A DNA stretch of 64,000 nt, taken from positions 62,001-126,000 of the forward strand of contig RHPI01001037.1 of NCBI GenBank assembly GCA_009103225.1, read 5' to 3'. The DNA comes from Chlorokybus atmophyticus. Taxonomy: Eukaryota; Plantae; Mesostigma and Chlorokybus algae. Below the pieces are notes generated by a model. The model made no database searches. It saw only the letters and a program-made list of their open reading frames with translations, and had not been told where the DNA came from. Position 1 is the stretch's first letter. Each line of letters begins with the position of its first letter. Of the stretch, positions 22,817 to 24,470 are shown piece after piece. Position numbers and translations under genes: made by a program.

Positions 22817-24470
22817 TCAGAATGCCAAAGCTGCAGAGCGATGACGTGCCCACGCCCTCGTCACGCCCATCATATGCTTCTGGAACGCAGCCAGGGGATG
22901 CTGCTGCTGCTGTCTGGCCCTGCGCAGGGCCAGAGCGTGCTCGGCTGCCCTCAGCTCTTCTTCCGTGAGCAGAGTGTAAGTGAATGCGCGGTTACCGGAA
23001 CGCAAGGCGGCCGCCCGACACAACTTCATGAACTGCGTGAAGTCATGTGAGTGTCGGAAAACCTGACACCCTGCTGACCATCGCCCCACACGGTTGCTGC
23101 CTGTATTACTGCTCGTTAGCAGCAGGCAGCATTGGCCATGTCCACAGATCATATGCCAATTCCAGCAGCGCGTGCCGTAATGCATGCACCGGGCAACGCA
23201 GTACGTGCACAATACACTCGTGTGAACACACTTCTTGTCAAACCCAACTTTGATAATCCTCAACATACCTTGCCGCAATTTCGAGCTCCTGTGTATGTTT
23301 AGGCCAAACACCCCCTGGTCTACTCTGCTGTTCAGACCAAACTGCTTGCGGCTTCGCAATACGCGCACCGGCCGATGCTGCACAAGAGCTTCGTACGGCT
23401 CCTCTCCACTGCGCCCAAAGTGCCTGCAATGAATACACTTGAAGTCCAATCATCACACATGCATAGCTTATGGCTGAAACGACAGGTCACTTTATACCTG
23501 CCGAGCCTGAAGGTCTCGGCATACTGGCCTGGTAACAATACGGCTGCTCCAGCTGGATTCAACGGGTTGGCCAAGTAGTGAGCTCCTGGCCTTGTTGTGC
23601 CCTCCCAAATCTGAACGCCTCGTTTAGTAGCAGATACACTTGCCAGTGACGGCTCAGCAACATACAGACCAAGCTTATGGACAAGGTTTCACTGACATGG
23701 TACCTTGAGTTGCCACCGGTTGTTGCTGTCGAGGTAAGTTGCTGCGATGAAGTCCTCGTACGTGTCGCGGCCATGGGCTCTGATAGTCGTGCGCACGCCC
23801 ACCAGGTTGAGCCCGTTGCTCTGCCACCGGTAACCCTTCGCTGCAAACGCTTGGCGAACATTGTGTATTGTTAAGCTCCGCGCCTGCGCCTGCGTGTGCA
23901 GCGAATAGTTCAACCTCATCGCAAAGTCATAGTACTTACCGCCATTAACACGTCTGCGCTGCTACCTGTCCATGTGACTGCGTATGTCATGCAACGCAGG
24001 CAAACTTCACAACCATGTACATAACTCAACAGCCACCAACACGATATCTGCGACATGCTGGCTGTCAAGTGCCTTAACACGACAGGTCGCTGGACAACAT
24101 CGTGTGCAAATGACAAGTGTTTCCAGAGCAACTAGTACAAAAGGCAAGACTGTGCTGCCAAGCCTGTGTCTTTCAAGGGCTGCATGCATCCATGCCTGCC
24201 TGCTTGCATGCGGGAATCATGATGTCTGTGCTGTGTGCGACTATGCAGCCATTGCACATGTAACAGCCCACAGAAGGGGATGCAAAATGCGTGAATGGAT
24301 GGCTACAGTTAATGCTTTTTGTTGTTCTGTGTCGAAGCGGCTGAAAGCAAGAACGCCGGCTAAGCAGGGCACGCAAAACTGAGACTCTTACCTTGCGTGT
24401 CGTGCTCCATGCAGCAGCTGTATCCCATAGATCCGCAAACGCATCTGCGCACGCAAGAAAGTATATGACA
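22817..24470 (-). CDS. Prokaryote/phage-like protein with a YkuD-type H-x15-S-x-G-C motif (putative L,D-transpeptidase/peptidoglycan-active enzyme), intron-containing; 5' exons uncertain
   Basis: Splicing at GT-AG sites gives [20 protein letters not shown]...YEDFIAATY...WQLK|[30 protein letters not shown]...LGR|[23 protein letters not shown]...QGVFGLNIHRSSKLRQG|SNRVGRWSAGCQVF...FTQFMKLCR...AFTYTLL with no stops or frameshifts. Confidence 0.8.

Follow-up and report, generated by a model that had tools for sequence, protein, structure and literature searches.

Does a nuclear gene of an early-branching streptophyte alga encode an enzyme of the kind that works on bacterial cell walls and, if so, where did it come from and what does it act on? 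This question is raised by a locus of Chlorokybus atmophyticus situated in a 64,000-nucleotide stretch of contig RHPI01001037.1 (positions 62,001 to 126,000; called here the window, to which all coordinates refer). An original prediction, made from the letters of this DNA, proposed an intron-bearing gene of bacterial or phage type, acquired horizontally and related to the L,D-transpeptidases of the YkuD family. The analysis reported here supports this interpretation overall, with changes to the extent of the gene and to the way in which it is assigned to YkuD.

A transcribed and spliced gene of six exons

The gene lies on the minus strand, where six-frame translation recovered all the peptide strings quoted in the original prediction. 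Its coding sequence extends from 24952 to 22817 and is made of six exons separated by five GT-AG introns. The translation of the spliced coding sequence (1056 nt) is exactly that of the 351-residue JGI model Chlat1/4280 (eukprot:jgi/Chlat1/4280/Chrsp29S04373; called here P0001), which is located on the Chlorokybus atmophyticus scaffold Chrsp29. A 1311-nt transcript contig from a public run of 2021 (X1) matches the gene with 0 mismatches and lacks all five introns, each junction being exact; the gene is therefore transcribed and spliced. The stretches skipped in this contig read CT..AC on the plus strand, that is GT..AG on the strand of the gene, and a contig devoid of five canonical introns can derive only from processed eukaryotic mRNA. 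In addition, run X2 (2013), which belongs to another study, contains a 384-nt piece of the last exon (22607-22990). In runs X3 and X4, two others from the study that produced X1, no match reached 90%, a result that is not evidence of absence.

The coding part of exon 1 (24688-24952) encodes residues 1-88 of an N-terminal extension and is covered by the X1 contig from 24910, its 5' end, to 24688. The start codon (ATG, 24952-24950) has an ACCATGG context and is the sole upstream in-frame ATG, the frame being open to the 5' end of the X1 contig. As to the two points that the prediction proposed to check with RNA data, splicing is confirmed by the X1 contig at all five joints and the N-terminus, with ATG at 24952, is placed as in the JGI model. 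Intron 1 (24445-24687; 243 nt, GT..AG, phase 1, joint 24688/24444 in the X1 contig) is followed by exon 2 (24392-24444; 53 nt), which is present in the same contig and encodes the last part of the N-terminal extension, and by intron 2 (23890-24391; 502 nt, GT..AG, phase 1), whose joint is also found there. The conserved domain begins in exon 3 (23704-23889), which includes the LNLVGVR strand, and is interrupted by intron 3 (23611-23703; 93 nt, phase 0) and intron 4 (23424-23497; 74 nt, phase 2). Exon 4 (23498-23610), between these two introns, encodes TTRPG, ANPLNP and the invariant Gln197, and exon 5 (23269-23423) encodes the invariant His207 (23422-23420), YEALVQ and the NIH motif with His250 (23293-23291). 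Intron 5 (23101-23268; 168 nt, phase 1), spliced out in the X1 contig, falls between His250 and Cys269. Finally, the coding part of exon 6 (22817-23100) encodes Ser266-Ala-Gly-Cys269 (Cys codon 23068-23066), the FTYTLL strand and a 46-residue basic helical tail. It ends with a TGA stop codon (22819-22817), beyond which a 3' UTR of about 297 nt (22520-22816) reaches the limit of the transcript contig and is represented in both the X1 and X2 contigs.

The range initially given for the gene, 22817-24470, does hold coding exons, and the at least four GT-AG introns announced for it correspond to four introns (502, 93, 74 and 168 nt) whose junctions are exact in the transcript contig. However, the gene is about 480 bp longer upstream, with a further exon (24952-24688) and intron (24687-24445), and its 3' UTR runs to 22520. 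The stretch starting with MRLNYS just upstream of exon 3, which had been read as coding, is intronic according to the transcript contig. Likewise, a first model of the 5' part (five exons, start MAFFVGV at 24495, acceptor at 23953) that gave clean splicing on paper was refuted by this contig.

Some minor observations concern the introns and the 3' flank. Intron 5 is in frame and devoid of stop codons, an ORF (22817-23449) reading through it; its retention would add 56 residues to the active-site loop, and the assembled transcript has it removed. Run X1 also contains a 240-nt contig (24158-24397) with a depth of 3.8, compared with 41 for the mRNA contig. It is nearly all intron 2, its last 7 nt belonging to exon 2, and may stem from pre-mRNA that had not been spliced or from traces of DNA in this run. 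Past the 3' UTR, the high depth seen at 22383-22445 comes from unrelated contigs with mismatches and loose ends and suggests a dispersed repeat.

Genomic surroundings

A multi-exon kinesin motor gene, found by eye in the translations, adjoins the gene on the plus strand about 4 kb away (about 28100-31000), with a P-loop GQTGSGKT at about 29640 and the motifs SSRSH and LAGSE; its motor exons were recognised at about 29.2-31 kb. The GC3 of the gene is 0.69, compared with about 0.71 for the kinesin pieces, the latter being a rough figure as some pieces are read out of frame; the introns of the gene have a GC of 0.49. Because of this kinesin neighbour and of a GC3 close to that of kinesin, the locus is ordinary algal nuclear DNA.

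These data bear on whether the gene could come from bacterial or phage contamination or from a misassembled genome. The assembly is locally imperfect, since a fragment of 562 bp bounded by N, 5.3 kb away on the minus strand (28664-29225), is 100% identical to 23356-23917, that is to part of intron 2 and to exon 3 through part of exon 5, introns included. A contaminating or misassembled gene is nevertheless effectively refuted by the contig lacking five canonical spliceosomal introns; moreover, three introns interrupt the conserved domain itself, and the GC3, roughly compared, is near that of kinesin. We thus regard the chance of such an artefact as negligible, and the argument that the original prediction had drawn from the introns is strengthened by the splicing of all five. 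The 562-bp copy abuts a single N at 29226 inside the kinesin gene. It probably arose as an artefact of gap filling or through a very recent duplication of a fragment, and is neither a paralogue nor a second gene.

The kinesin gene is also broken by about 200 bp of (GA)n (29360-29561) ending in N. When ten flanking ORFs were compared with Pfam, a weak Lipase_3 fragment was the only match; the plus-strand ORF at 20997-21488, which weakly resembles class-3 lipases (E 5.7e-4), is probably an exon of the downstream neighbour.

The conserved domain belongs to a large phage family

Residues 108-305 (about) of P0001 are a member of a large unnamed family found mainly in tailed phages and Bacteroidota. 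PHROG 3000, a profile of 209 positions whose function is unknown, was matched collinearly by exons 4, 5 and 6 at positions 72-102, 107-149 and 151-204, respectively, and exon 4 also matched phrog_33083, a profile named 'endolysin'. Searches of Pfam, NCBIfam and PDB sequences with the exons, with P0001 and with a 78-sequence profile yielded nothing meaningful. An exhaustive profile search returned 4322 clusters at E<=1e-3, 1476 of them at E<=1e-30, the size of the family being counted here in clusters at 50% identity. Viral sequences make up 71-96% of the ESM Atlas clusters of the family, and one Atlas cluster is mainly cyanobacterial. Members from cultured phages, all annotated as hypothetical, include crAss002 gp5, proteins of Bacteroides phages DAC16-23 and SJC03 and gp35 of Pseudoalteromonas phage ACA1. 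They are 38-40% identical to the algal protein over about 190 residues (E 1e-32 to 1e-38), with 85-94% of the domain covered. The 438 bacterial genome loci are mostly from Bacteroidota, with some from Gammaproteobacteria, Desulfobacteria and Calditrichota. The closest relatives (42-46% identity) are encoded on environmental metagenome contigs that are unidirectional, densely packed and phage-like. In agreement with these results, the family had been described beforehand as one of Bacteroidetes and aquatic tailed phages with relatives in cyanobacteria.

The family was aligned with 78 sequences at 30-46% identity. Gln197, Gly205, His207, Leu219, Arg229, Gly246, His250, Ser-Ala-Gly-Cys-Gln-Val 266-271 and Tyr-Thr-Leu 299-301 are invariant among them; P0001 keeps all of these (16/16 columns) and 51 of the 60 columns conserved at 80% or more. 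The motif NIH250-x15-Ser266-Ala-Gly-Cys269 is thus invariant across the 78 sequences, and the H-x15-S-A-G-C signature had been read correctly, from His250 to Ser266, including its His and Cys.

P0001 was the only eukaryotic match among the 5.8 billion proteins searched, EukProt included. In the literature, the coverage of which was incomplete, no report was found of the gene nor of a eukaryotic YkuD-like enzyme. Both results fit the earlier statement that no eukaryotic member had been described.

A YkuD-like fold

Residues 95-351 were modelled by AlphaFold2 with the 78-sequence alignment (pLDDT 92.1, pTM 0.85). In Foldseek searches, only YkuD-fold chains matched the beta domain of the model, which contains the beta-sandwich typical of YkuD, and the sole significant match was LDT-Go (8qzg; E 8.8e-4, probability 1.00). 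The structural neighbours include the cross-linking enzymes LDT-Go, Ldtfm, LdtMt2 and YcbB, and the top ties include the carboxypeptidases Pgp2 and Csd6. The His-Cys spacing of the algal domain is within the YkuD-type range of about 14-21 residues, and E. coli LdtB, LdtE, LdtD and DpaA have S-(H/S/I)-G-C at the place equivalent to that of SAGC. The best local hhalign path aligned SAGC on SxGC, and a low-stringency path (mact 0.05) also aligned NIHR on IHGT.

By contrast, P0001 did not match Pfam PF03734, PF13645 or PF10908 at E<=1, and hhalign comparison with YkuD profiles, which are thin (1-8 sequences), was not significant (P = 0.1-0.3). Among the 78 members, two gave weak YkuD matches (best E 0.01) and one a weak Tlde1 match (E 0.013). 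It should be noted that a search for homologues of E. coli LdtB returned nearly only enterobacterial sequences (92-100% identity, one at 55%) and hence no diverse YkuD profile, and that only three diverse sequences were gained when viral contigs were scanned for YkuD. Because the sequence-profile comparison was not significant, the domain is filed as YkuD-like according to its predicted fold and its motif, and not as a member of Pfam YkuD; the YkuD assignment made at first holds to this extent.

The L,D-carboxypeptidases Csd6 of H. pylori (4xzz) and Pgp2 of C. jejuni (6xj6/6xj7) are 13-14% identical to the algal protein, with no detectable sequence homology. These enzymes have an NTF2-like C-terminal domain and act in their own periplasm for cell shape, whereas the algal family displays the additional invariant His207 and Gln197 and has SAGCQV instead of S/T-H-G-C-I/V-R. 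The 1,3 L,D-transpeptidase LDT-Go of Gluconobacter oxydans, 12-14% identical to the algal protein, is of a cross-linking type found in Alpha- and Betaproteobacteria (PMC10864386). No significant sequence match was found with Tlde1 (PF10908), a T6SS effector, or with DpaA (E. coli YafK, 8ikr); the delivery of the former as a T6SS toxin and the substrate of the latter, the Lpp-peptidoglycan link, are both unlike the algal case. Taken together, these results add a eukaryotic member, whose gene has introns and is expressed, to a large and so far uncharacterised family of phage proteins with a YkuD-like cysteine-peptidase fold.

Relatives are fused to wall-cutting and wall-binding modules

Fusions of the family domain were found with Amidase_2 and LysM (P0128), Amidase_2 alone (P0130), Phage_lysozyme (P0151, P0053), PG_binding_1 (P0187, P0219, P0282) and a Pesticin-like lysozyme (P0178). 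In an ESM Atlas phage cluster of proteins of about 504 aa, it is joined to the baseplate-hub domain Phage_base_V; T4 gp5 carries its lysozyme at the equivalent place. One BFVD member is named 'Lysin'. All these fusions to wall-cutting or wall-binding modules belong to the relatives, not to the algal protein. Endolysins and virion-associated wall hydrolases are built in this way, and for this reason peptidoglycan is the probable substrate of the family, a reading that applies to the phage and bacterial relatives and not as such to the alga.

Gene neighbourhoods of the phage members were varied. In crAss002, gp5 (L002, 3246-4538) is followed by gp6 and gp7, two small single-pass proteins with an N-terminal and a C-terminal TM, respectively, just upstream of the terminase; gp5-gp7 may constitute an unannotated lysis cassette of crAss-like phage. 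In DAC16, a 65-aa protein with two TM is encoded two genes upstream of the family member, and ACA1 gp35 sits between the tail tube and a chaperone. No membrane-protein neighbours were found for the closest metagenomic relatives. Given the YkuD-like fold, the Cys/His site that never varies and the association with wall lysis, a testable function can now be proposed for many phage genes, and this family, which has no Pfam, NCBIfam or functional PHROG name, could represent a new class of lysins.

Probable horizontal acquisition of the gene

A phylogeny had been proposed as a check of the origin of the gene. It returned bacterial and phage relatives only, the algal protein being the only eukaryote among the matches and all its neighbours bacterial or phage sequences, but it did not resolve the algal branch. 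In a maximum-likelihood tree of 221 sequences, no supported clade holds this branch, which has a length of 0.75 and a deviating composition, and we therefore name no donor. Introns removed in the mRNA, together with a eukaryotic neighbour, point to a nuclear gene acquired horizontally. Its source would be a tailed phage or the bacterium that such a phage infects, a Bacteroidota type being the most likely, and the five spliceosomal introns would have been gained after the transfer.

The amidases encoded by the dae genes of ticks and mites and the GH25 lysozymes are horizontally acquired wall hydrolases of eukaryotes. As with the algal gene, a bacterial or phage peptidoglycan cutter has become fixed in a eukaryotic nucleus, with introns and expression. 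The fold and chemistry are different, the algal protein being a YkuD-like cysteine peptidase and the others an NlpC/P60 amidase or glycosidases. Few wall-cutting enzymes are known to have been captured by eukaryotes, and the Chlorokybus copy brings a cysteine L,D-peptidase fold to this set.

Predicted chemistry

The structure and splicing of the gene, its family membership, the fold, the conservation of residues and the domain fusions of the relatives are directly established; the chemistry and the substrate of the algal protein are proposed by analogy. The core (about residues 108-305) is a YkuD-like beta domain with a putative Cys269/His250 pair arranged as H-x15-S-x-G-C, plus a second invariant His, His207. 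By analogy with YkuD-fold enzymes, Cys269 would attack the stem-peptide bond at the L-centre of the diamino acid, and the thioester formed at this residue would then be resolved by water. The algal protein would accordingly be classed as a hydrolytic L,D-carboxy- or endopeptidase, not a cross-linker. We infer a hydrolase over a cross-linker because the phage domain is the wall-cutting module of lysins.

A true L,D-transpeptidase, which would form 3-3 or 1-3 cross-links (in plastid peptidoglycan, for instance), would be consistent with the many cross-linking enzymes (LDT-Go 8qzg, Ldtfm, LdtMt2 and YcbB) among the structural neighbours. Yet Pgp2 and Csd6, at the top of the same comparison, are carboxypeptidases, and members of the family are overwhelmingly carried by phages and joined to lytic modules and to a baseplate hub, where cross-linking would be useless. 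This renders a transpeptidase distinctly improbable. An expressed, horizontally acquired nuclear gene for a predicted YkuD-like hydrolase is the best explanation overall, and we hold it to be reasonably probable.

Features found in the alga only

The phage proteins of PHROG 3000 (crAss002 gp5, ACA1 gp35) are about 200 aa long, are encoded by intronless genes and have kept an acidic cluster; unlike the algal protein, they carry neither a 94-residue N-terminal extension nor a 46-residue C-terminal helix. The 94-residue N-terminus of P0001, found in the alga only, contains 20 Ala, 11 Arg, 10 Pro and 8 Ser and has a net charge of +9. An Arg-rich stretch is followed by an Ala/Val-rich segment (residues 41-57), the sole hydrophobic stretch of the N-terminus, which is marginally hydrophobic. 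Judged by composition, there is no classical ER signal peptide at the N-terminus, the first 14 residues holding two Asp. By the same measure, this region resembles a green-algal organellar presequence. The C-terminal helix, also added in the alga, is basic.

Alone among the 78 sequences, P0001 has lost all four positions of the acidic cluster (Asp175->Arg, Asp230->Ser, Asp234->Phe and one Asp deleted): TTDPG has become TTRPG, and the RD..(R/K)D...D loop is without three of its Asp (about 23590 and 23353-23330 in the window). Elsewhere, Asp is found at all four positions in 52 of the 78 sequences, and the remaining non-algal members have Asp, Asn or Glu at no fewer than two. The cluster resembles a cation site. 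Its absence from the algal protein may point to a changed milieu or substrate, or to relaxed constraint, and activity or specificity may have been altered.

This loss, which is unique, is compatible with an expressed relic or a repurposed protein, in which the activity on the wall would have been abolished or redirected towards a non-peptidoglycan peptide or towards binding, as are the long branch with its deviating composition and the two lineage-specific extensions. However, the six exons together provide an uninterrupted ORF of 351 codons, none of the 16 invariant residues has changed and the transcript is correctly spliced in one run, with a piece of it in a run from a second study; we consider a relic unlikely.

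Bacterial wall or plastid peptidoglycan

A hydrolase of this type could be directed against bacteria or towards the alga's own chloroplast. In the first case, the protein would be a domesticated antibacterial lysin, exported or sent to a lytic compartment and used against mucilage bacteria. Cutting bacterial walls is the natural use of the family, which comes from phages, a lineage-restricted gene is typical of defence acquisitions, and the tae-derived dae amidases of animals and horizontally acquired lysozymes work in this way. Nevertheless, the N-terminus is not a classical signal peptide, and the walls of Gram-negative bacteria are shielded from outside by the outer membrane. We see this domesticated lysin as a serious possibility, with a chance well short of even.

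As regards the target itself, we lean slightly towards the plastid's own peptidoglycan, which may be the target with a chance just under even, over associated bacteria, for which the chance is lower, because the N-terminus is presequence-like and not an ER signal peptide. The restriction of the gene to a single lineage fits poorly here, as it argues against a conserved plastid function. Synthesis genes for plastid peptidoglycan are reportedly kept in streptophytes and the enzymes that cut it are poorly known, which makes the present gene a concrete candidate for study. All ten core enzymes of peptidoglycan synthesis are reportedly encoded by streptophyte algae (PMC7455551), and neither hydrolases nor transpeptidases are mentioned in a review of plastid peptidoglycan. 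We tentatively suggest, as one possible scenario, that a phage lysin domain was recruited to remodel or split the chloroplast peptidoglycan of the alga, the presequence delivering it and the loss of the cation-binding acidic cluster being an adaptation to the organelle. If this were true, a virus-derived enzyme would service the relict bacterial wall of an organelle.

DipM, which has a LytM domain and descends from a cyanobacterial protein, occurs widely in the Archaeplastida that have peptidoglycan. It is described as a nucleus-encoded factor required for peptidoglycan hydrolysis in chloroplast division (PMC4015805), and to that extent offers an earlier example of a nuclear gene whose product acts on the plastid wall. 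By comparison with DipM, the Chlorokybus gene is lineage-restricted and of phage type.
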